A stretch of 64,000 nucleotides of DNA from positions 1,240,001 through 1,304,000 of the forward strand of contig NC_134036.1 of assembly GCF_964204645.1 (NCBI RefSeq). The letters are read 5' to 3'. A program made the translations under genes and the position numbers. The first letter of the stretch is position 1, and each line of letters opens with the position of its first letter. Shown here in pieces: positions 6,657-59,239 of the stretch. The notes beneath the pieces were generated by a model. It had not been told where the DNA came from. It saw only the letters and a program-made list of their open reading frames with translations, and did not search any database. This DNA is from Tubulanus polymorphus. Its lineage: Eukaryota; Animalia; Nemertea.

Positions 6657-9287
6657 CCCTGGGAAGCCCAAACCATCTTATAGGTCTCAGAAAAATATTT
6701 GCAGCTAGTGAATAATACATCAGCATGCCAGCTATCAGAATCTAGTGATTTTTCCAGCATCCTCTGACCTTGACCTACTTTTCCAGACTGGGTCATATAT
6801 GACCCAGTGGGCTACAATGACATAAAATGTTTAAAAATATAAATCAAGCCAAAGTCTTAAATTAGATAAATCATCACTTTATTACAGCTCAATTTCTAAC
6901 ATGATACTCTTTGTAACAATTTCTGCGCTCATTGAAGCATAGGGGAATGTTACATTTTTCACATATGGTATCGGTCTTCAAACTGCAGATAGGGCAGCGA
7001 CCCCGTTTTTCTGCTTTCTGTGGCCAATGGGCTAATTGATCGTATCTTCCATCTAAGCTAGGTTTGATGCGTACCATCTTCGCAGGTACAGGGGAAGGAT
7101 CACCAGCAGTAGATGGCCGACCACGCTTCCTTCGCATTCCAACTTCAACTAAGCCATGTGCGATTTCTGCTTGAAACTGCCTAAGCCTGAGAATAGACTT
7201 TTCCGGTGTGTTATGCAATCTGGAGTCACGTTTATAAAGTAACCAGGCATTTATGACCGCAACACTGACAAAATGCCAGAATAAAATAGTATACCACCTA
7301 CGGGTTCGAAACCTAAATTTACTGTGTGCTAAATAGGCATCTAAAATATCAACCCCTCCCATAAAAGAATTATATTCCTTCACAAGAAACGGCCTATTGA
7401 CATCACGAAAATCATTCCTGGCTTTGTCCCACCTACGAGCTGCCTCAATAGGCTCAATACTGGAACAGGTTGTAATAAATGTTACAGACTTTGTGTCTTG
7501 CCAGCGTAGACACATCACTTTCTCAGTATTCTCCACACGAAAACTATGACTTCCACGCCCCTTCGCTTTCAATTCTTTCTCGGAAGGCAAAGGGCAATTG
7601 CCAAGTCTATTTGCCCTTGCTGTACCGGTGTAATAAAACCCAGAAGTCAGGAGTTTTGTAGCCAGTTGTACAGAGGAGAACAAATTATCTGCAAAAATTT
7701 TATATCCACAATTTTTTGACAAGGTTTCACACAGTTTCATCACAATGTTACCAGCTATACCGAGTTTCTGATCATAATCATCACCTTTCTCAGCGCCTTT
7801 CCCTTGATATACCTCAAAATCATAACAGAAACCACTGTTGTCACACCTACACCAGATTTTAAACCCCCAAGGGTGTGGTTTATTTTTGATATATTGCCTC
7901 ATACCACTGAACTTGCCCTTATAGGGCACCATTTGCTCATCAATCGATAGCTGCTGGGGAGGAGTAACCAGACGGCAACGATCCCTAAACATATTTATCA
8001 ATGGACGAAGCTTCCACAGCTTGTCCTTCTTATCATCATCGCACACGGCATTGTTATCTACAAAGTGAATATATGCAATCAAATTTAAAAACCGATTCCT
8101 GGGCATAACATCGGACACTTGGGGATAACGGATGTAGGTGTCCCAGTACATACGGACACTGTTCATTTGAACTAAGCCCATACGCATATAAATCCCAAGT
8201 AAAAGTTCGATTTCCTTCTCATTAGATACATCTACCAGCTCCTATTTTCTGAGAGCTATACAAGTTTGTATTGTCTACAATCAATTTTATCATGTCCGAA
8301 GTGAAAAAGCGACGAAAATACTCTAACGGAGTTTCAGTTACTCCTGTTGGATCTGTCGGTTCAATATTTGTCCCAGTAAAGTTCACAACAGGTACAACAA
8401 AATTAGACTTTGACCAAATATACCGCCGATTTATACCCTGACCAACGCCAGCCATCTGAGCCAATGGAATGTCATCATCAGAATCAAAGCCTTCACTTTC
8501 ATTTTCATCGCCTGGAAATTCATCGTCATCGCTTTGTTGTGAAGCAGCAGGTTGCATGTCTTCATCGTTGTAATCATCGGGGTCTGGGAATTCATCATCA
8601 TCATCATCATCACTCTGTTCATCATCCCCAATATCACTGTCATCCGCTGTAACCGCATCAATTATTTGGTTCAGACTCATACATTTACGAGGACGTTCCA
8701 TTGTATTTGATGTCGATGACAATGGATGTCAGAATCTGAAAAATAAGATCAGTAATTTAATCATAAATGTTCTCTGATAATGCTGAAATTCATTTAAGTT
8801 AGATGATTTATTGATACAAACCCTTGGAAGAAAATCGTGAATAAATTTATAAAAATTTTTATTTTCATATCACCATGACTAAGGTTGACATTTCATCCCA
8901 GTGGGTCACATATGACCCCACCAAAAAGCACCGGTTTGTTTGAACACACGGATATGTAAATCAGAACTGTCACTGTTGCTAGACATTCTTTATAATTTAT
9001 TTTTTCGAATTATCACTTGTAAATAAGCTTTACATACCTTATTTGAGTATAAATTGTCGAACACAAACTGGCCTGACCATCCAATTTTCAATTCATGGGC
9101 GCAGCCATTTTGTAATGAACAAAGTTGTTACAAGATGTCGCCACAATCTTGTTACCATTGGGTCATATGTGGAACATCGGGTTGTAGGTTCAGTAAAAAT
9201 AGTAAAATGAATGGAAAATTAACATCTCAAGTTCCCAGGGGTACCCAAATGAGGTGGGTCACATGTGACCCACAGGGCTACCCAGGG
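6657..9287 (-). mobile_element. piggyBac DNA transposon, full length (2631 bp)
   Basis: TTAA at 6653-6656 and 9288-9291. TIRs CCCTGGGAAGCCC and reverse complement CCCTGGGTAGCCC (12/13 match). Internal transposase present. Confidence 0.96.
6889..8701 (-). pseudogene. piggyBac transposase (PGBD3-like), one frameshift near 8222-8230
   Basis: N-part from ATG 8701 (acidic tail, TPLEYFRRFFT, NTNLYS) stops at 8222. The other frame continues SNEKEIELLLGIYMRMGLV and carries the DDD triad (SIDEQM, FADNLF, MGGVDILD) and the C-terminal Cys-rich domain RCPIC..CEKC..LC..NCYKEYH. AATAAA on the minus strand at 6878-6883. Confidence 0.92.
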
Positions 9288-13091: not shown

Positions 13092-16000
13092 CTGAAATAA
13101 ATACCGAAATAATGAAACAAATTTAGAACTAGGCAAAATTTCAAAAACAATACCGAAATTACTCAAAATGATAAAAAATAATATTGAAATGACAATTCTA
13201 AAAAATCTTTCGAAATAAATTGACGGTTGATAAAGTTTTTTTTTTCAAAATTAAATCAACACGCAAAAGTCGATTGTGTGGAGTGGGTGTAATTGGCTTT
13301 ACCTCGTTAAATAGATCAGAGACACCTGGCGGACTCAACGTGAACCCTTCCGTCACCGAACTCGATCTCCGTACGGCTGTGTTACTCTCGGTCTCGGTCA
13401 CCGTCGCTGTCTTCCCATCATCAGCGCCACCTAGGCGGCCATCTTGTTCTGTATCGATTCCGATCCCTTCTGGTATAGAAATCGATCGATTCACTCCGGG
13501 TATTCCCAGTTTATACGTTTTCGAGCGATGTTTATTTTTTCCCACCGTCGAGGTAGCCGAGAGCGAAGCCCCGGCCTCTAATCCGTCGACCATCGATTTC
13601 GACCTCTTGATTTTCATCCCTTTTAACTTAGCGATTAACCCCCCTCGATGTTTCCTGCCTTTTCCCGCTGATATTCCGTCCATCATTGACTGTGATCGGT
13701 TGATATGGACGCCTTTGTTGCCTTCAGTATCCAGGGTAACGGCTCCGCCGAGGAAGCTTCCCCCAGCGGCGCCACCTATTGGTATATCATCGACAAGCGA
13801 TTGGGACCGGTTTAAATGTATGCCCTTCACTTTTTTGAATATGTTTGGTTTTTTCGACGTGTTCGAGGGAATATCGTCCGGACTAGTACCACCGCTGGTG
13901 CTGCCATCTGTCAGCGGTGATTGAGGACGCTTCGTTTTCGAACCCTTGATTTTGGCCATTAGGGCGGCGCCACCGGTGCGTTTTTTGCTCGGTTTCAATT
14001 TTAAGTCTGGTGTGGATATCGACACGTCTTGCCCGGATAACTTATCGATTTTCGACCCTTGTTGAAGGTCTGTAGGCGACTGTGTCGAAACCGCAAATTT
14101 CGGTAACTTGACGTCGCCATGGAGATCATGGCTCGTCAGATTATCGTCGTTCTCTCTATCGCCGTCAGATGTCGCTGTATTACCCTTCACTTTAAATAGC
14201 TTTTTCGTTTCGAGCTTGAAATCGTGAAACTTTTCTTTAAATCCCTTTTTCTTCTTCCTACGTTTTTTGTTACTGCTACTCGCCGCTGGGGCGGCGTCCA
14301 TGTCGATAGCACATGCGCCACCAACCGGATTGGCCCAGTTCTGAGCGTATCTATCTTTTAAATCAGCGTTCAAATCCGTTGGACCGTTCAGCGTAGCGTC
14401 GTTTACACCAGCACTGGCAGTTAAACCGAGGTTAACTCCAACTCCTGGTGTTTCTTTCACTGTCAGGTTATCGCCGCTGTTCTCGCTGCTGACGATACTA
14501 TCAGCGTCCAGATCGGTCGTTTGTATTCCGGAGAACTTATTCTTTAGTACCGTCTTCAGATCCAAGGAGGCGCCACCGTCAGCACCACCGACACCGGCGG
14601 CGGTTTTCAATTTTCCGAACGGATTTTCGAAAAACCATTTTTCGTTTTTGATCACGGTGTTGACCGAGTCCGAGTCCTCGGCCGTATCGCTGCCGTTGTC
14701 CGGGTAGATTTCCAGTTGAGCCCGTTCCTCTTCGAATTCACCGTTCGAATCGTCGTCCAGTAAATTCGTCATGCTCTCCGACAGGCGAGATTTATCGTCG
14801 ATTTGCTCCTCCAGTGATTTCTCCATCGTCACCTCTCCTGCGCCTCCTGTCTTCAGTTTGATATCCGCGGTCAGAGCTTTCAATCCGTCCCGGAAGAAAG
14901 TCTTCGTCGTGTCCAGTTTGTCGCTGATTCCTTTCATTTTGTCTTTTAGCGCGAAAGTTTTGTCGCCACCGTCGACACTTTCAAATTCCAGCTCGTCAAC
15001 GTCTTTGATTGTTGCCGTTTTCAATTGTGGAACAGCAACATTTGGGGATTTGACATCGCTATCAACTGTTCCCACATCTGGAGTTTTCAAATTAACTTTT
15101 CCCAACTCTGGAAGTTTCACGCCGATTTTTCCTAAATCTGGTTTTCTGACATCTACTTTTCTCGAATCAGCTTTTGCGAATTTTGGCAACTTAACATCAA
15201 CATTTCCCAATGCTGGGTCGACTCCTGCAATGTCCGGCTCACCGATAACGGAATCAGTAACATCTAATCCGTCGATACTAGTGTCAACGTCCATTTCTAC
15301 ATTACTCGGCACCGTGCCAACTTGAATTCGTGGAGTTTCGAGATTTGGAAGGCCTTTGGTTTCCAGATCCCCAATATCGCTGTTTATATTCAGATTATCG
15401 CCTGCGCTTAGTTCAAACGGCAATTCTAACTCCATTCGAGCGATTTCCGGTGCTGGGCATGTGACCTTCGCCTTTTCGGTCACATCCAGTTTAGATTCAA
15501 ACTGATCTCCAGCTCGCGTCGATTCCAACATTTGCAAGGCGTCTACCGAAGCCGGTAGTTTCAGATCCTCTTCGCTAGGTGTCGCCACAGCCTTGACCAT
15601 ACTGAATCGATCAACCATACGACCCCAGATCGTCTGCGTGTCTCTGGAAGGTGATTTCGCCCGGATTTGTTCCGTTGCCTCCACCGTTTCGGGAGTTATT
15701 TCTCCCATGTCGTCGAAAGTCGGATCGTTATCGGATAACCTTCTCAGACGATCGTTCAGTTTGTTTTTCCACGAGACTAGCGATTCGTTTTTATCCCGAT
15801 TGTTGACTCGCAGGTCGAACTTACCGCCAGTAGCGCCATCTACACCGATGTAACCGGTGGCGGCGCGTGGTGGCTGAATATTTAGGAATCCGGAACTTTG
15901 CGTGAAATCTTCCTCATCGTCTCCGAACACGTTATCAGATATATCTATCTCAGGTGGTGATATGATCGAGTCGAATTTTCCGACATTTTCGAAATTCATA

Positions 16001-19000
16001 TCGTCATCAGTTTCAATATTGATGTTTGGAATATTTTCTGTAATCGATTTCGAGTTAGCTCGTAGATCAAGTTCCCCGCTTGGTATTTGGACATCAGGAG
16101 GGATAATATCTTTCCCCAATCCTGTAGTAGTTCTGAGATCCAGTTTCCCAAAACTGGGAACTTGGACACCAGGTTGGATATTGTCTGTACCAAATCCTGA
16201 AGTTGCTCCGAGATCCAGTTTACCACTGGGAACTTGGACACCAGGTGGGATAATGTCTGTACCCAAACCTGAAGTTGCTCCGAGATCCAGTTTACCAAAA
16301 CTGGGAACTTGGACACCAGGTGGGATATTGTCTGTACCAAATCCTGTAGTTGCTCTGAGATCCAGTTTACCACTGGGAACTTGGACACCAGGTGGGATAT
16401 TGTCTGTACCCAAACTTGATGTTGCTCTGAGATCCAGTTTACCACTGGAAACTTGGACACCAGGTGGGATAATGTCTGTACCCAAACTTGAAGCTGCTCT
16501 GGGATCCAGTTTACCACTGGAAACTTGGACATCAGGTGGGATATTGTCTGTACCAAATCCTGAAGTTGCTCTGAGATCCAGTTTACCACTGGGAACTTGG
16601 ACACCAGGTGGGATATCGTCTGTACCCAAACTTGAAGTTGTTCTGGGATCCAGTTTACCACTGGGAACTTGGACACCAGGTGGGATATTGTCTGTACCAA
16701 ATCCTGAAGTTGCTCTGAGATCCAGTTTACCACTGGGAACTTGGACACCAGGTGGGATATTGTCTGTACCCAAACCTGTAGTTGCTCTGAGATCCAGTTT
16801 ACCACTGGGAACTTGGACACCAGGTGGGATAATGTCTTTCCCCAATCCTGTAGTAGTTCTGAGATCCAGTTTACCAAAACTGGGAACTTGGACACCAGGT
16901 GGGATATTGTCTGTACCCAAACTTGAAGTTGCTCTGGGATCCAGTTTACCACTGGGAACTTGGACATCAGGTGAGATGATGGCTGTACCCATTCCTGATG
17001 TAGCCCTGAGGTCTAGTTTACCAACAGGAAATTCGCCAACTTCCCCAGACACATTAACATCGGGTATTTCCACATTTCCGAATATGTCTCCTATGTCAGT
17101 GTTCATCGTCCCACTCGGAAAATCGATTCCAAAACCTTTTGAAATAACATTCTTGGCTTTATCTTGTATCTTGTTGTTCGCAGCAATTCCTGCATTGCCA
17201 TCGGTTCCTGGTAAACTAACGTTTAGCGCAACACTGTTCAATTTGCCCGGCTCATCAACATCCGACCTGCTGTCCGATCCGTCGTCCAGATCTGAACTCT
17301 TATTCCCTCGTTTCTGCTTACGGTGCCTTCTCGGGGACAAACCTTTGAAGCCGCCTTTTAGTTTATCAATGAAACCAGTCTTTTTCGTGAAACTCGCATC
17401 CATCGTGTCATTAGCGACGTCTGGTGACTGGATTTGTAACGAAGGCACGTCAGCCGTACCGTCAATGTTTACGTTAGGTGTTCGGACGTCAAGGGAAGGT
17501 GCATCGGCATCGAACGAAATGATATTGTTGTCACCAGATATTTTGATACTTTTTTGGGGAACATTTGGCCTAACGTTAGCTAGCCCATCATCCAATCCAC
17601 CACATAAATCGATGTTGTCTGACATACTGGTTTGACTTAGTCGGATGTCCTCTATATCAAAGAACTGATTAGCGTCGACTGAACCTGTAATTTTATCAGG
17701 TATATTCATGTCGACTGTCTGATTAGGGTTGGTCGTATCGATGTCGGCTTCCACGTCAATCCCAAGAGAGTGTCGGCCTATGTCAGGTAGTCCTACCTGT
17801 GGCATCTTTGTTGGAGCATTAGGAGTTTGAAAGTTATCGGATGATTCGATTGCCACCGCTTTCAATTCACCAGGACCCCCCACGTAGAAAGCTTCTACAG
17901 AGTTCATCGGTTTGGCGTCCAGGTTCGCCGCATCTGGCAGGTTTACGTCGGCGAGTTGGTTTTGTAACTTTGTCTGTTTAGCACTGACGCCAACAGCTGG
18001 AGTATCCACATCATCAGCTCCCTCTATTGCAGCCATTCTCAATTCACCATGGCCTCCTACGTAAAACGCTTCGGCAGGATTCATCGGTTTAGCTTCCATT
18101 TGAGCAGCATGTTGCGGATTCGGATCCACGAGATGTTTTTGTAACTCTGCATTTCTAACATCGATTTCTACATTAGGAGCATCAAAACCGACAGAGGCAC
18201 CAACTGGCGGGGAATCCTTGTCATTATTTTTGTTCCACTCGTCCTCGAATTTCGATATCGTTCGATCTTTGAAATCTTTGATCTTATCCAGAAATCCCAA
18301 CTTTTTCGAACCGCCGCCGCTAGACGTCACTGCAGCCGTGTTCGCCGGGACATCCACGGCGGGGATTTCGACTTTAGGAGTACTGGTACGCGGGAATCCA
18401 GCATCGGGAAAATCGGCACTAACGGGTGAACTGTTAGCGAGTACGTTCTGTTCGAAGTCGATACGTTCGGAGAATCCGGAGTCTCTCATCTGCTCGACGT
18501 CATCGTCCAAATTTCCAGAATCGTCTAAATTCACTTTGACCTTTCGACCTCGTACGTCATCAGACCCGTCAATTTTTAATTTAGGAAACGCCATTTTAAC
18601 TTTATCAACGTCATCAGGATCGAAGTCGCCGACAACATTCACATCAGGTGAACTCATCACTGAATCTGGTCCGGTCTGTTTTCCGTATTCCGTAGAATCC
18701 GGGCCGACCTGTATTCCGTATTCGGCCTCCAACGACGCCTGGTATTCGCCTAGAAGTTTCTCATCGTCACTTGCATCATCCTTTCCTTCATCCTTTTCCG
18801 TCGACCATCTCGGCATCCGGGAAGTTATGCTGTCCAAATTTCTTTGAAATGCGGCCGGAATTCCGGAGATTCCCGAGCGATTCGTGTTGACGTCGGCAAT
18901 TTCCGGTAACGAACTGAAGTTCTGAGCCACCTCAACACGTCTGCTGGCCGCGAGTCCGCCGGTATCTCCCCGTAGATTTAAACCCACTCCGCTCACGTCG

Positions 19001-21580
19001 CTTTCCACTGAATACGTACCGAAATGATCCTCAACGTCGACCGACCCGACATCAGGTGTGGTCGGCACCTCGTTATCGGTGTCTGAGTAACCCGATACAT
19101 CATCGACGCCGTTTAGAACACCATCGTCTGCGCATGCTTGGAAAATGTTTTCCATGGCGACGGCCTTTTTCACGAGCCCTGTAAAAAAACAAGCAACGAC
19201 CGTTTTAGGAAGTGTAGTTCACTGATTGCAAGCCGCCCTTTAGAAAATGAATTTTGAACAATCTTTTTTCTTGAAAATTGAAACTAGATCAAGCGTTGAC
19301 ATTGTATTTGGTGTATGGGGCGCCCCCTTATGGTGTAATTCGTAAGCACGTTTGTTAAGGAATACATACTTGGTCGTTCGTGGTCTTTGTCCTCGTCGCA
19401 TTCCGAATCGGAAGTTCCCACGTAGTTGTTATCGTCGTATCGCGAATCTATGTCCGGTGCCGATTCCGTGGCCGCACCCGAGTTTTTGCGGACCATTTCC
19501 TCGAAAACCTCTTCATCATCGTCAACACCATCGATTTCGCTATCGGTTACAAACTCCGGCAATTCGATATCGTCATCATCATCTTCATCATACGAGAAAT
19601 CGTCGAACGTAATCGAGTAGTCTCCGTCGTCGTCGCCAGATGTCACTGCTTCCAGCGTATCGTCGTCCGATTGGTCGAACGCAGGTTGACCCAATTCTAA
19701 TTGGTTCACGGTTTCTAAATTGATCACGTGTTCGCCGTCTGCGTCGCTGACTGTGATGTTCAGAAAATCGTCGTCATTCGGATCAACCTCTGCTGTTGTT
19801 TGTATCTTCTGCTGTTGTTGCTGTTCAGTTGTCTGAACGTCGTCTTTACTGAATAGACCTGTGTCGAATATCAAATATTCGATCATTTCATACGTGTAAA
19901 TCGTTAGATTTTCGAATTTCGTCTAATGCCATAAGACTTTCGACATAACTTTTCATCATTCATAATTTTGGAGATTTCTAAGTTTTGTTCAAATAATTTA
20001 AGGAATCCAAATTTAGATAAATTTTTCATTAAAATTTTTGAAATTTGAAATCAACTGCTTCTCCTTTTTTTTACCTTTGAATTTTCCGAACAGACCGATG
20101 TCGCTATTGTTCCGTGTTAGCGTCGGCTCAGATTGGGCTGTCGTCGTTGCCGGGGTTACTTCGATTAGCGACCTTCTTTTCTCATTGTTGGACGACGTTT
20201 CCGGGAACTTGGGAATTTTCAGATCCACGTCGGTTTTCAGGTCTTCGTTTGAATCTTTGAAGCGAAAAATTCCTGGAAAAGAATCGTATGAAATTCAATA
20301 ATCTAGAAAATTCGTTGCTTGGAAAACAATTTACTTCAGCTTTGGATTTATTTCATTAAATTTTTTGTATGGCGAATTGAGAATGAGCTAAGACTGTTTA
20401 ACATATTGGTATCGAATCAATAGGACTAGGCTTAGTTTGGTCTTGTGATTGAGGGTGGTCGCAACTGGTGTTTTAGCACTGGATGTAATATGCTTAGCCT
20501 GGTCGGGTTATCAGGCCCAACTTTGAAGTTTGCTTCACCATCTGGGTCTATATCAACAAACCTAATAAATAATCTGACGAAAAAAATTGGCCCATTTCGT
20601 CCTCTAAAGTAAGATGATATTCTACCTTTAAACTTGTCGAAAATTCCAACTTCGTCATCGCTATTAGCATCAGTGGCGACACCTGGTTGTATTTCGCTGA
20701 AGCTCGAATAACGTGTTCTATCAGTTGCTGCGTCCGGTGTTGCAGTTGCTATAGTTTCACGCTTATCCATCCCCACAGCATCCGTATCATCCTCAGTAAC
20801 CACTGTAACATCCACCTCAGCTGCCAGAGTTGGTTTGTTAGTTTTATCGACGATATTGATTGGTTGTTTCTCGTCCACGTTGTTTTTATCGTCTGTCGCG
20901 TTTTTCAGCAGTTGTTTGTTTGAAAGTCCGGTAAAATTAAAAAATCGATCAATTAAATCTGGATCTTTGCCCCCCTCAACGTTCTCCTCATTTTTATCGT
21001 CATTATTATCCGTCACTACGGCAACAACGTTATCGGTATTGTTGATAACGCTGTTGCCGGTTGACCTCTCTCTTCCACCGCTTCTGATTGCTAGGTCCAT
21101 CGGTTCCAGCTTCCCAATCTCTTGCGGCTGCTTAGCAACGCCGTCTGGTTGCTGGGCAACCTCTTTCGGATTCGCAGCAACCGTATCTGGCTGTTTGACA
21201 ACCTCTTGTGGTTGCTTAGGGACCTCTTGCTCTTTGTTGCCACCGAATACCCCTCGTAACCGGTTGAATAGCCCGCCAGATGGCGCTGCTGCTGCTGCTG
21301 ACGATTCGGGCAGCTTGCCTTCGATGGATATTTCTGGCTTCTCGTATTCGATTCCGACATCGATTCGCTTCGGGCATTCCTCGCTTGCCGGTGCTGGTTT
21401 CGATGGTAGCGACGCCTGTTGGATGATAACGTCGTCCTGGTTCGGCTTCTGGTCTCGCGATTTCTTGAAAATGTTCGGAATGATTTTAAAGATGGCGCCC
21501 TCCTCCTCGTCGTCGTCGTCATGGTGATGATCATTGTCAGTGTTTTTGTAAGTGGGGAAAACCGAAAAGGTTTTGTCCAT
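12861..21580 (-). CDS. Giant acidic, intrinsically disordered AHNAK/periaxin-like repeat protein, ~2582 aa, 5 coding exons
   Basis: Exons 21580-20626, 20272-20075, 19858-19370, 19178-13303, 13091-12861 total 7749 nt, joined by GT-AG introns with consistent phases 1,1,1,0. Motifs DLKIPKF and DVKLPKF recall AHNAK-type repeats. The family assignment is tentative. Confidence 0.85.
13303..19178 (-). CDS. Coding exon 4 of AHNAK-like gene (5876-nt giant exon)
   Basis: Acceptor tttttttacag|GG; donor GAG|gtaaag. Overlaps the 1991-aa ORF almost entirely. Confidence 0.9.
16078..17022 (-). repeat. Coding tandem repeat, 13 x 72/75 bp (GKLDLRATSGFGTDNIPPGVQVPS[F])
   Basis: Counted from the translation; three units carry an extra Phe. 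Confidence 0.95.
19370..19858 (-). CDS. Coding exon 3 of AHNAK-like gene (very acidic)
   Basis: Acceptor gacacag|GT; donor CCAA|gtatgt. 489 nt. Confidence 0.8.
20075..20272 (-). CDS. Coding exon 2 of AHNAK-like gene
   Basis: Acceptor ttttccag|GA; donor AAAG|gtaaaa. 198 nt, frame preserved. Confidence 0.8.
20626..21580 (-). CDS. Coding exon 1 of AHNAK-like gene (MDKTFSVFP...GIFDKFK)
   Basis: Acceptor ttttcag|GACA ATG at 21585/21584; donor AAAG|gtagaa at 20626. Confidence 0.8.
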
Positions 21581-23436
21581 TGTCCTGAAAATATAGAATA
21601 TGGAAAACGAAATTTTACTGAAAGTTTTTGAATTCAATGGCCGTGGAAAAACACGAAATGATGGCGGTTTCATCAGAAAAAATGGCTTCTCCCGTGTATA
21701 TCCCCCAATGACGCAATCAAACTGTCGCTTTCTAAAATATCCAAATTATTTTCGTGAACTGTTTCCGACTGTTTCGACCTAACTTAGCCGTCGCTGGTTC
21801 TTTACAAATCGTCGAATAATCTTTCAAATACTTTTTCAAAATAGAGAATGACAATATAGATTGTAATGACGTAGTTAATGATGCCATATTTTTCACACAA
21901 AAGAAGTAAATACCCGTAATTAAGTTTTTTACGTATGTTATGTGAAGTTTATTTACTTACGGCGTTCACCACTCTCGGAATATTTATAAGCGTCGTATTC
22001 GCGTACTGTGTATGCCTTACATTATTACGAATAAGATAATTCGGAATTTTGAACGTGGCTCGATTTCATTCAAGCATTTAAAACTCGCTTTATGTGTATA
22101 TAGTACTATTATCTAAATACCTCCTAAATTACCCTGGTCGCTCTTCGGGCCGCGCGCGCGGCTTTTCGTTTGTCTAAACAAATTTCGGCAAGCAGCGGAT
22201 TAGCGCGGATTATTGTTAATCCGTCGACTGTGAACGGGATTAAAGTACTCGTCGTTGGATTAACGTTGTAACGCATTCCGACGACGGGCACTCCTTAATT
22301 ACTGGGATTATTGAACGATTAGTGATTATAACGTTTTTATAGACGCTTTCACGGAATATGGCCGCCTCCATAAACCCCCCTAACTCAATTGAAAATAAAT
22401 TGAGTTGAACCCGGGTTGTAGTTAATCTAAAAAGTAATCTAGGAATTAACCCTCTTGTAAAAAGATAATTGGCGTTATTTCACAAATCGTGTGTCCAGTA
22501 AGTCGGGGCCATCGTGAAATTAATCGTATCGGGATGTTTGTTGAATTCAGTTGGTTTTAAGCATTAAGAGGAGAGTGGTCCAGTTTTATATAACTGCCAC
22601 CCAGCCGTTCACAGTTCAATGAATTATGTAAAATGTAAATGACCCCAAATCTTAAGGTGAACACCACTCTTCAGTTGTACGCAGTTTAAAGAATTGTATT
22701 AAGACAATTTTTGAATGGCCCTTGGCGTGGTCAGCACTGGTCAGTTCTTAGAAAGTCACTCAGTCAGCCCGTCAGTCAGTCAGCCAAATCCAGGTCTCCA
22801 TAAACCCAGGGTTCGACCGGACCCATTATACGGGTCAGTTCACACGCCGATTTTATAAGAAGTCGCTTGTATAATAGTTTTTCCTTGGAATCGATTCTAA
22901 GGCTCTGATCCGTGAAAAAAAGTAGTTTTAGTTTTAGTCGAGTCGGTCGATCTTTGTGCCTCGGCGCAGAAAAGTTAAAAAAGCCCCTGAAGGTCCGTGT
23001 TTCGGTTTTCTGGCAAACAAACAACAAGTTCACATGTACCGCAGGTGTTTCCAAGTAAAACCAGCCCTTAGTGGAGTAGGCGATGGCAATCGTGATGGAC
23101 AGTTCCTCTGTTAGAATAGATGACTCTTTGAGCTTTCAACAGTATAAAGACGATGTTCAGATATGTTACATATTATGTTATATTTCTCAGTGTTTCTGCC
23201 ATAAACCAGTAAGACCAACTCTTAGTTAAGAGTGGTGACGAATGGCAAACGTGAGGCAGAGTTCCTTTGTTAAAATAGATGACTATTTGAGCATTCAACA
23301 GTATAAAGACGATGTTTAGACGTCTGGTCATTCTCAATACCGTCGTGGTCTTATGAATATCCATAAACTCAAAACCATTGTCATAATCTACTTTTTTAAA
23401 ACGCAGAAAAATCATAAACCATTGTTGCTACATTGA

Positions 23437-56054: not shown

Positions 56055-59000
56055 TTATTGTGTTCCAGTGAGTACAGTGTTTATATTATAAACTCGCAGT
56101 GAGTCCGTTTTATTACTGTTATCCCAGTGACGGATAACTACAGTGTTACTGTCACACACTTTGTGTATTTCACCTGTATCACTGTCTGCAGAGTTCAATA
56201 CTATGCGCGGGTGATCTATAAACCCCTCATCATTATATCTCATACTAATCACGGCTCCTTTGTTACCAGTCCCACAGTTTACCGATAGTAATACATGGTT
56301 ATCATTGATAACACATGGCTGTCCCACAAGTGGGTTAATTGTTAGTCCGGAATCTTTCACATTGATAGAACTGACCAGTTCCGCATCAGCTGTTAGATAG
56401 AGTAATCTTTCTGATCTATCACAGTATACAAACATGCGTCCCCGTGCGTCGACATCGAAACTGTTGATATAATCATACTCTCCATCCGGGAGCTGATATG
56501 TCTTCACACGGTCTCTATCAATTAAACTGTTTACAGGGTTTTCTAGTAAACGTAAAACACGAACGTCTCTACTTGACTGAATGTAAATATTGTGACCGCG
56601 AATGACTAGTGTTCCACACCCAGACACAATATCAGTGACATCTTCCTCTAACACTTTGTCCTGATCTTTATATTTTCTCAGGAAGAGTTTCTCGTTTTTC
56701 TCCACGACTACAAACAGGTGACCGTTACTATCTGTATCGAGTCCTAGTAAACAATCATCACCATCACACTCTATATATCTCTTCATTACATTATTATCAT
56801 CCATGTAATATATATCACTGCACTCCCATCCCGCACATATTATACGTGACTGTTGACCCGTCTGCTCACCAGGTAATGACGTCACTAGGTTAGGTGAGAA
56901 GTCTGTCTGAACCTGTTTACTGATCGTTAATGAATCAATGACGTCACCAATGAAACTCTCCACTTCATCCATTCTCCATATGACGTCACCAATAGATATC
57001 TCCAATTTATCTATTCTCCCTTTGACATCATTGATTGTTCTTCCTGTGACGTCATCGATAGTCTTATTCAGTTTTACTTCCAATGCTTCAAGTTGTTGTT
57101 CAGTACAGCACCGGTTCAGCCTCTCTTCAAGTTGTTGTTCAGTACAGCACCGGTTCAGCCTCTCTTCAAGTTGCTGTTCAGTACAGCACCGGTTCAGCCT
57201 CTCTTCAAGTTGTTGTCCAGTACAGAACCGGTTCAGCCTGTCTTCAAGTTGTTGTTCAGTACAGAACCGGTTCAGCCTCTCTTCAAGTTGTTGTTCAGTA
57301 CAGCACCGGTTCAGCCTCTCTTTAAGTTGTTGTTCAGTACAGCATTGGTTCAGCCTCTCTTCAAGTTGTTGTTCCGTACAGCACCGGTTCAGCCTCTCTT
57401 CAAGTTGTTGTTCAGTACAGCATTGGTTCAGCCTCTCTTCAAGTTGTTGTTCCGTACAGCACCGGTTCAGCCTCTCTTCAAGTTGTTGTTCAGTGCAGAA
57501 CTGGTTCAGCCTCTCTTCAAGTTGTTGTTCAGTACAGCATTGGTTCAGCCTCTCTTCAAGTTGTTGTTCAGTACAGCACCGGTTCAGCCTCTCTTCAAGT
57601 TGTTGTCCAGTACAGAACCGGTTCAGCCTGTCTTCAAGTTGTTGTTCAGTACAGCACCGGTTCAGCCTCTCTTCAAGTTGTTGTTCAGTACACCATTGGT
57701 TCAGCCTCTCTTCAAGTTGTTGTCCAGTACAGCACCGGTTCAGCCTCTCTTCAAGTTGTTGTTCAGTACAGCATTGGTTCAGCCTCTCTTCAAGTTGTTG
57801 TTCCGTACAGCACCGGTTCAGCCTCTCTTCAAGTTGTTGTTCAGTGCAGAACTGGTTCAGCCTCTCTTCAAGTTGTTGTTCAGTACAGCATTGGTTCAGC
57901 CTCTCTTCAAGTTGTTGTTCAGTACAGCACCGGTTCAGCCTCTCTTCAAGTTGTTGTCCAGTACAGAACCGGTTCAGCCTGTCTTCAAGTTGTTGTTCAG
58001 TACAGCACCGGTTCAGCCTCTCTTCAAGTTGTTGTTCAGTACAGCACCGGTTCAGCCTCTCTTCAAGTTGTTGTTCAGTACAGCACCGGTTCAGCCTCTC
58101 TTCAAGTTGTTGTTCAGTACAGCATTGGTTCAGCCTCTCTTCAAGTTGTTGTTCAGTACAGAACCGGTTCAGCCTCTCTTCAAGTTGTTGTTCAGTACAG
58201 CATTGGTTCAGCCTCTCTTCAAGTTGTTGTTCAGTACAGAACCGGTTCAGCCTCTCTTCAAGTTGTTGTTCAGTACAGCACCGGTTCAGCCTCTCTTCAA
58301 GTTGTTGTTCAGTACAGCATTGGTTCAGCCTCTCTTCAAGTTGTTGTTCAGTACAGAACCGGTTCAGCCACTCTTCAAGTTGTTGTTCAGTACAGAATCG
58401 GTTCAGCCTCTCCTCAAGTTGTTGTTCAGTACAGAACCGGTTCAGCCTCTCTTCAAGTTGTTGTTCAGTACAGAACCGGTTCAGCCTCTCTTCAACTGTG
58501 TCTATAGTGCGCTTCAATTGAGAGAATTGATTTTCTAAATTATCATGAAACAGTTTAACATTGTCAATTAGAGAATTAAGACGTTGATCAATGTCTGGTT
58601 GAACTGTTCGCGCTTCACTGATCGGTACAGTGTTAACTCTAAACACGTATTCGTTCCCGTGACGACTAGCACCGATCACAAGACCTGAACCTATTGATTG
58701 CGGAGATTGTTGAAGTCGTGATTTGTAGATTTCACACATTTCTTTAATTTCACATTTAACGATAAACACGTGATTCTGAGGTTGATGATTGAACGGGATC
58801 GGATGATTCGGTATCTCCACACCAGAGGGCGCATCTCTCCATTCTAATTTCACCTGAAATAGAAAACGACATTTTTATTTGACTCTCACCTCGAAGTGGT
58901 CACCCGTCTAGTATCACACGCGCATGATGATGAAACAAGATGAGAATTACAGATTCTTACCTCATCAAACGGCATCATCTGCACCGCTATTACGTGACCT

Positions 59001-59239
59001 GTATAGATGGTTTTTAGTTCGTGTTTAATAGCAGCCTCTAATTCTTCACACCACAGAGTTATATCAAGTTGTAATATATTTCCATCCGCAGTTATTCGAT
59101 CAGATTCCAAATTAAACAACGGCTGATAAAAGTAATTTTGTATCGTTCTGTACTCATTATCCTGATCGGACCAAACGGTAACGCGACGTCCTTTGAAAGG
59201 TACGGAAATCTCGAAACGATCCGGATTACTTGTAGCCAT
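56055..59239 (-). CDS. Uncharacterised 1025-aa protein: N-terminal globular domain, Cys-rich 13-aa-repeat coiled coil, C-terminal beta-propeller (NHL-like) domain
   Basis: Exon 59239-58961 (gtcaacATGG, 93 codons, donor GAG|gtaaga), 107-nt intron, acceptor tttctatttcag|GTG, exon 58853-56055 (932 codons plus stop). Blade-like motifs GLDTDSNGHLFVV and SFDVDARGRMFVY. Confidence 0.88.
57090..58493 (-). repeat. Coding minisatellite, 36 x 39 bp (EERLN[RQ][CF]CTEQQL)
   Basis: Exactly 1404 bp with no indels. Confidence 0.97.

Follow-up and report, generated by a model that had tools for sequence, protein, structure and literature searches.

We have analysed a 64,000-nucleotide (nt) stretch of the chromosome-scale contig C12 of the ribbon worm Tubulanus polymorphus (positions 1,240,001-1,304,000; hereafter the window, whose own numbering is used for all positions below), with the focus on a two-exon gene on its minus strand. 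The gene is intact and comprises 93 + 932 codons. Its product is an apparently cytosolic modular protein with a long central stalk, the length of which is set by a coding minisatellite that varies among paralogues. The features of the locus are the following:

58961..59239, minus strand: exon 1, with the ATG and 93 codons, encoding the first half of the N-domain; equals residues 1-93 of the annotated paralogue P0002.
58854..58960, minus strand: intron of 107 nt, GT..AG, phase 0, placed by splice signals, a contig that skips it and the paralogue junction.
58614..58853, minus strand: start of exon 2, encoding the second half of the N-domain (~170 amino acids (aa) in all); fold unassigned, no Pfam family.
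58494..58592, minus strand: pre-repeat heptad coiled coil of ~33 aa, with hydrophobic spacings of ...4,3,4,3,4,3,6.
57090..58493, minus strand: 13-residue array, 36 × EERLN[RQ][CF]CTEQQL with a 39-bp coding unit and 59 Cys; proposed register ijk-abc-βββ-efg-h.
56919..57089, minus strand: post-repeat coiled coil of ~3 14-residue (two-heptad) units, DV[IK]GR[IM]D[KE][LV]E.S.IG, and a linker; Ile/Val at a and d.
56058..56903, minus strand: six-bladed NHL-type beta-propeller formed by the C-terminal 282 aa, as modelled with AlphaFold2 (AF2) and supported by fold matches.
56055..56057, minus strand: stop codon TAA, read from the sequence.

The ATG, at 59239, is contained in an open reading frame (ORF) spanning 58886..59239 (minus strand), with an in-frame stop 6 codons upstream, and exon 2 belongs to a second ORF (56055..58853, minus strand) of 932 codons plus stop. 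The two are joined in frame by a donor at 58960 (GAG/GTAAGA) and an acceptor at 58854/58853 (TTTCAG/GTG). The plus-strand ORFs over the array are by-products of the repeat. The ORFs, the splice signals and the continuity of the frame bear out the intact two-exon gene described in an earlier note on this DNA, which also had the order of the parts right (N-domain, coiled coil, 36 repeats, coiled coil, propeller head). The note had seen no obvious signal peptide, and our scan agreed: neither a signal peptide nor a transmembrane segment was found, the maximum 19-residue Kyte-Doolittle mean being 0.79. The exons were analysed separately, with residues 1-178 of P0002 as a proxy for the N-domain (the first 93 residues are identical to those of the window gene and the next ~85 contain 2 differences).

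Splicing of the family at the predicted junction is shown by a contig, in agreement with the paralogue models. This 142-nt contig of run X4, with a depth of 272, omits exactly 107 nt, with ends CT..AC on the plus strand, and the depth in this run is 6-43 over the intron versus 270-440 in the exons. The NCBI models of the annotated paralogues use the same junction (...MMPFDE/VKLEW...). The earlier note had named the 58960-58854 intron as the place for a transcript check; a contig that skips precisely this intron was found, and it is not assignable to the window copy, as discussed below.

The central 468 residues of the stalk are encoded by the 39-bp minisatellite. Tandem Repeats Finder reported 36.2 copies of the unit (57086..58495) with 93% matches and 0% indels, and an in-phase cut divided residues 121-588 of exon 2 into exactly 36 units of 13 residues, with the consensus EERLNRCCTEQQL. 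Both results reproduced the repeat count and the unit EERLN[RQ][CF]CTEQQL given in the earlier note. The frame is open across all 1,404 bp of the array and the end domains are intact. Seven positions (L4, N5, C8, T9, Q11, Q12 and L13) are invariant in 36/36 units, and variation is confined to positions 1, 2, 3, 6, 7 and 10. Position 7 is Cys in 23 units, Phe in 12 and Trp in 1; position 6 is Arg in 25 and Gln in 11; position 10 is Glu in 32 and Gly in 4. The hydrophobic residues are spaced 4-3-6, the pattern that had been noticed from the sequence at the outset.

Units 14-20 reappear as units 23-29, synonymous variants included, which points to a duplication of a nine-unit block and to growth by unequal exchange. 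The array is thus likely to grow and shrink by this route. It is the longest of its unit in the genome, the next one having ~29-30 units on contig C7 (P0006). As a separate observation, the 39-bp consensus is identical or only 1-2 bases off in the arrays of loci L002-L030 on other chromosomes. The propellers of those paralogues have a dS (synonymous substitutions per synonymous site) of 0.47-0.64 versus the window copy, a divergence that predicts ~4 synonymous differences in each unit; the single-unit copies L014 and L018 do carry synonymous changes. Near-identity of the units despite such propeller divergence suggests that interlocus gene conversion or homogenisation acts on the arrays, or else that the nucleotide sequence itself is constrained.

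The period of the array bears directly on the structure that the stalk may adopt. Helical coiled coils tolerate ~3.33 to 3.9 residues per turn, and insertions of two or six residues give rise to a three-residue beta-layer in parallel trimers (Hartmann et al. 2016, PMC4786415). A 13-residue period corresponds to 13/4 = 3.25 or 13/3 = 4.33 residues per turn. Both values fall outside the helical range, so that a continuous coiled coil is unavailable to the array. In a canonical layer, β1 and β2 are hydrophobic and β2 is small. The next helix is capped by D/N/T/S at β3, with D/E/Q at g returning the hydrogen bond, and K/R is the usual choice at e. Such a layer comes after a-b-c (or e-f-g), and what comes next is always e-f-g (PMC4786415).

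The unit can be read in this register, with [F/C]7-C8-T9 as βββ, E10 Q11 Q12 as efg, L13 E1 E2 R3 as hijk and L4 N5 R6 as abc. The exact 13-residue period, kept over 36 units with no indels, is among those equivalent to an insertion of 2 or 6 (9, 13...). The β2 position is Cys in 36/36 units and in 150/151 paralogue units, in line with a hydrophobic β1 and a small β2; Cys is not among the β2 residues named in the rule (A, V). At β3, T9 is found in 36/36 units (149/151 in the paralogues), and at g, Q12 is likewise found in 36/36 (144/151). The flanks are in phase as well: the pre-repeat heptads place L4 at a, and L13 of the last unit opens a heptad run with 3-4 spacing. In total, five of the six beta-layer rules and both flank registers fit, Glu at e being the deviation. 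The sites that vary in the 36 window units and in the 151 units of 22 other loci are β1, where both F and C are allowed, and positions predicted to be exposed or tolerant. The MATKDD-type register assigned to [FC]-C-T-E-Q-Q-L by the earlier note therefore holds against the published rules, with e as the departure. Its "heptad + hexad" label had the period and the hydrophobic spacing right, and βββ-efghijk-abc describes the unit more exactly. The post-repeat heptads have mainly Ile/Val at a and d in our own assignment of these positions. In the GCN4 variants described by Harbury in 1993, Ile/Val at both positions reportedly favours trimers over dimers.

Two known proteins come closest to such a stalk. 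Table 2 of PMC4786415 lists the spacing βββ-efg-hijk-abc-βββ for MPN010 (2BA2: YVT-HKQ-LDEK-LKN-FVT) and for the prophage tail fibre 2C3F, in the latter at one interval. MPN010, a DUF16 protein of Mycoplasma pneumoniae, is a homotrimer with two layers 13 residues apart and the nearest analogue of known structure, and its RYVTHKQLDEKLKNFVTKTEF aligns with RFCTEQQLEERLNRFCTEQQL. It differs in being bacterial, in having one period versus 36, and in having Val at β2 and Lys at e instead of Cys and Glu; no homology is detectable. Tcar0761 (DUF3782, Thermosinus carboxydivorans, 5APZ; PMC4786415) shares with the stalk a long run of identical short, heptad-flanked units, with a layer of the N-capping form [aliphatic]-A-T-K-[polar]-[DE]. 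This prokaryotic protein has 14 units of 9 residues, versus 36 of 13 here, and Ala at β2. When six units were searched against the PDB with phmmer, nothing significant came back (five weak matches, 2BA2 among them, best E 0.25), and a feature search of the ESM Atlas with the stalk gave only low-recognition repeat proteins. In the phmmer alignment, the two layers of 2BA2, 13 residues apart, coincide with the FCT motifs of adjacent units. The sequence supports the beta-layer reading but does not prove it, and we give an alpha/beta coiled coil about even odds.

The two ends of the protein were compared with known folds. The AF2 model of the C-terminal 282 aa was confident (predicted local distance difference test (pLDDT) 88.9, predicted template modelling score 0.88) and contained 24 strands, that is, six blades. 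The top Foldseek matches were the NHL domains of Brat, Thin and TRIM2/3/71, with 12-15% identity, and VIA-align gave Z scores of 22.8 for Mei-P26, 22.6 for Brat and 21.7 for TRIM3 over ~240 residues at ~3 Å and 9-14% identity. These results agreed with the propeller-like head anticipated by the earlier note. Pfam detected no NHL repeat in this domain, and designed and bacterial six-bladed propellers score within ~2 Z units of the NHL domains. Hence, the model and the fold matches point to an NHL-type six-bladed propeller, a wording that we have kept to "type" because of these two results, membership of the NHL sequence family not being established. The resemblance to the TRIM-NHL proteins (Brat, Mei-P26, TRIM2/3/71; Z 21.5-22.8 over ~240 residues) extends to the order of the parts, with the six-bladed NHL-type propeller placed after a coiled coil. 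The ribbon-worm protein has neither RING/B-box nor a Pfam NHL repeat. TRIM-NHL proteins form antiparallel dimeric coiled coils, and these are of fixed length. The NHL domains of Brat and Lin41 are RNA-binding.

The AF2 model of the N-domain proxy (P0002:1-178; pLDDT 84.8) was beta-rich with three helices. Pfam assigned it to no family, and hence no RING/B-box family was seen. Foldseek against the PDB gave nothing convincing (best E 0.05), an exhaustive VIA-align search reached a Z of 6.2 at best, with generic beta-sandwiches, and the ESM Atlas gave a template modelling (TM) score no higher than 0.42 in the shape search and no usable match in the feature search. The single significant match, obtained in BFVD, was a protein of Medusavirus stheno (E 4.6e-6, TM 0.59 by query, 13% identity), which gives no function because the viral protein is uncharacterised. 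The Foldseek comparison of both ends, proposed in the earlier note, was informative for the C-terminal domain, which matches NHL propellers, and left the N-domain without a match in the PDB.

The gene belongs to a large family of ~45 or more copies within T. polymorphus. When 1.84 billion representatives were searched exhaustively with a profile, 14 matches were obtained, ten of them at E <= 1e-30, and all named ones were from this species; a word-indexed search of a 5.8-billion-cluster index with the propeller recovered only "uncharacterized" T. polymorphus proteins. No relatives outside T. polymorphus were found in the exhaustive profile search and two word-indexed searches, and a literature search yielded no published description of the family. 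As all the relatives that turned up are T. polymorphus proteins labelled "uncharacterized", the suggestion that this is an undescribed animal family is supported. The genome contains 91 propeller matches, ~45 of them full length, with tandem clusters on C12, C8, C6, C11, C7 and C40.

The paralogues share the N-domain and the propeller and vary in the stalk. P0017 has none, and the distant P0019-P0021 instead have long coiled coils of the ordinary kind. At 22 other loci there are arrays of 1 to 28 units, always in exact multiples of 13 aa; the annotated P0006, on another chromosome, has ~29. Across the family the arrays range from 0 to 36 units, with 3-15 in most paralogues; P0002, P0004 and P0005 are natural short versions. 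The 14-residue two-heptad repeat DVIGRVDKVEKSTG also varies, from ~3 copies in the window gene to ~30 in P0001. Some members (P0001; C11:8502480-8508674; C8:759982-762726) have two propellers in one open frame of up to 2,257 aa, and in them ~30 copies of DVIGRVDKVEKSTG part the propellers, giving these proteins another stalk module that can expand. In P0019 (residues 225-260), one of the distant paralogues, the 13 residues AQSTSQDPTREEL take the place of the single ancestral unit; compared by eye, these show a proline helix break and then T-x-x-x-L, with an offset matching that in [F/C]-C-T-E-Q-Q-L.

In P0008, P0013, P0014 and P0016, from C8 and other contigs, the same linker and propeller stand at the N-terminus, directly ahead of a caspase domain (Peptidase_C14, E 3e-67 for P0008). 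P0008 and P0014 have the QACRG and SHG motifs, and the active-site region of P0016 is degenerate. Versus the paralogues, the window gene has a dS of 0.13 with the nearest copies, rising to 0.64 with those on other chromosomes, and a ratio of nonsynonymous to synonymous substitution (dN/dS) of 0.3-0.7 in the propeller and 0.2-0.5 in the N-terminal part. Such ratios indicate that the family copies are under selection.

Based on these data, we propose that the window gene is a real, intact member of a Tubulanus-restricted family of cytosolic modular rods whose stalk is most likely a homotrimeric alpha/beta coiled coil, a proposal to which we assign an even chance of being correct. Each rod would consist of the N-domain (~170 aa), a parallel coiled-coil stalk and the NHL-type propeller. 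In the predicted homotrimer, every unit would contribute ten helical residues and a three-residue beta-layer ([F/C]7-C8-T9), with C8 pointing to the trimer axis, T9 capping the next helix and the chains swinging 120 degrees at each layer. At ~1.5 Å per residue, the array would form a stiff rod of ~60-70 nm with 36 cysteine layers, to which the flanking heptads would add ~14 nm. With less support, the rod might fix the distance between three propellers and three N-domains, and the propeller might serve as a ligand-binding or clustering module, since paralogues fuse it directly to a caspase. On this reading, the family could have a role in cytosolic sensing or cell-death signalling, also a weaker part of the proposal. 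The β1/β2 cysteines would line the trimer axis at each layer, and we may speculate that they bind metal or respond to oxidation. Equally speculative is a pairing of R6, at α3, with E10 across chains.

The earlier note had left room for a match to an already characterised family with this repeat, and one Pfam match of this kind was obtained. A scan of both exons and of the C-terminal domain gave Galaxin_repeat (PF24748) at 93.9 bits versus a cut-off of 28, the other matches (ANAPC2, DUF445) being weak and driven by the repeat. The score would be compatible with a galaxin-like, secreted, disulfide-linked Cys-rich matrix protein, and galaxin-like repeats do have CC dipeptides ~13 residues apart, as in the stalk. 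The sequence between the CC pairs, its composition and its predicted secondary structure are different. Genuine galaxin-like ORFs of T. polymorphus have CC pairs every 13-15 residues in a G/T/S/N-rich sequence with ~20% identity to the stalk, which is E/Q/L/R-rich. The Pfam cut-off is exceeded; secretion and G/Y/N-rich stretches separating the CC pairs, both typical of galaxin-like proteins, are not what we see, as there is no signal peptide and paralogue propellers are fused to a cytosolic caspase. We have thus rejected the assignment: with equal CC spacing and a different composition, the match tracks the spacing alone and is an artefact of it, and a galaxin-like matrix protein is hardly credible here. 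Galaxin-like loci of T. polymorphus lie at C2:28550000-28551523 and C11:7249090-7251003, with others on C9, C4 and C10.

Two further explanations compete with the homotrimeric rod. The array could be a tolerated, fast-changing spacer that forms a kinked or continuous helix in a TRIM-like antiparallel dimer, a single helix or a flexible segment, with the fit to the beta-layer rules being coincidental. The family does include stalkless members, e.g., P0017, so that the array is not essential to it, and beta-layer sequence patterns are known to be frequent in coiled coils, a warning given in PMC4786415 itself. Against a spacer, the strict 13-residue period cannot hold a hydrophobic seam on a continuous helix, 4/13 hydrophobic residues are too many for a charged single helix, and the motif rules and flank registers fit as counted above; the mainly beta-branched residues that we place at a and d of the flank would disfavour dimers. 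We regard a spacer as unlikely, though a serious competitor. Alternatively, the 36 units could result from a recent runaway expansion of the minisatellite, neutral or mildly harmful, in a paralogue that is maybe little used or decaying. The exceptional length of the array, when most paralogues have 3-15 units, its nearly identical unit DNA and the nine-unit block duplication would all be expected in this case, and neither a database protein nor the spliced contig could be matched to the window copy. Three observations speak against such decay: 1,404 bp of open frame with no indel between intact end domains, the ~29 units of the annotated P0006 on another chromosome, and a dN/dS versus the nearest paralogues of 0.2-0.5, not 1. 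A runaway expansion therefore seems quite improbable to us.

Several observations weigh against the proposed rod as a whole. Position e is acidic (E10 in 32/36 units, G in 4/36) where K/R would be usual, and the invariant N5 at position b is unexplained by the model. The phmmer match to 2BA2 (E 0.52) is not significant homology, and MPN010 serves as an analogue only. The closest fold relatives of the propeller, the TRIM-NHL proteins, use antiparallel dimers, which by analogy would argue for a dimeric stalk; both the structure of the stalk and its trimeric state are predictions from sequence. Since the units are near-identical in DNA, their conservation owes no less to recent amplification or homogenisation than to selection and is a poor guide to the latter. 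As for the gene itself, its exact product is absent among the database proteins, its length being within the searched range. The spliced contig has 2 mismatches and may derive from a close paralogue, so that it is not proof of expression of this copy, and the runs that cover the stretch, X4 included, have no RNA label on record. The sensor or scaffold function is reached by inference only.

If the stalk is confirmed, it would represent a variant with a 13-residue period, a Cys core and 36 layers in a cytosolic animal protein, within an undescribed protein family. Single layers are known from the mitochondrial DUF1640 proteins, and repetitive beta-layer fibres from prokaryotes and phages (PMC4786415). 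The fibres have hitherto been a prokaryotic and phage curiosity, with short natural runs and a 13-residue period only in single instances; the fold would then be extended to metazoans. The paralogues would offer biophysics a set of natural length variants (1, 3, 4, 5, 8, 13, 15, ~29 and 36 units), and a cysteine-lined core would be of interest for metal-binding or redox-responsive protein materials. Should the stalk prove to be an ordinary or disordered spacer, what is left would be a coiled-coil/NHL-like family, specific to this lineage, whose coding minisatellite is unstable. The large, fast-turning, species-restricted expansion, with an N-domain or a caspase alternately on the same propeller, is the pattern expected of invertebrate innate-immune or cell-death sensors.

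A bolder version of the proposal, which we consider improbable, would make this the longest natural alpha/beta coiled coil (36 layers versus 14 in Tcar0761) and the first to occur in an animal protein of the cytosol. Each layer would then put three (C8) to six (C7 + C8) thiols on the axis, and together they would form a trigonal thiolate ladder for metal binding or redox sensing, coupled to propeller heads in a caspase-linked family. The length of such a ladder would be tuned by the minisatellite, with the unit kept identical across chromosomes by gene conversion.

Elsewhere in the window, a 432-aa ORF at 6889-8187 (minus strand) encodes a full PiggyBac-type transposase domain (DDE_Tnp_1_7, E 3.7e-72). 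An open frame of 1,991 aa at 13198-19173 (minus strand) has no Pfam family, as is also the case for the neighbouring ORFs at 19284-19886 and 20432-21673. This long frame contains a tandem repeat of its own, with 12.9 copies of a 72-bp unit at 16087-17023.

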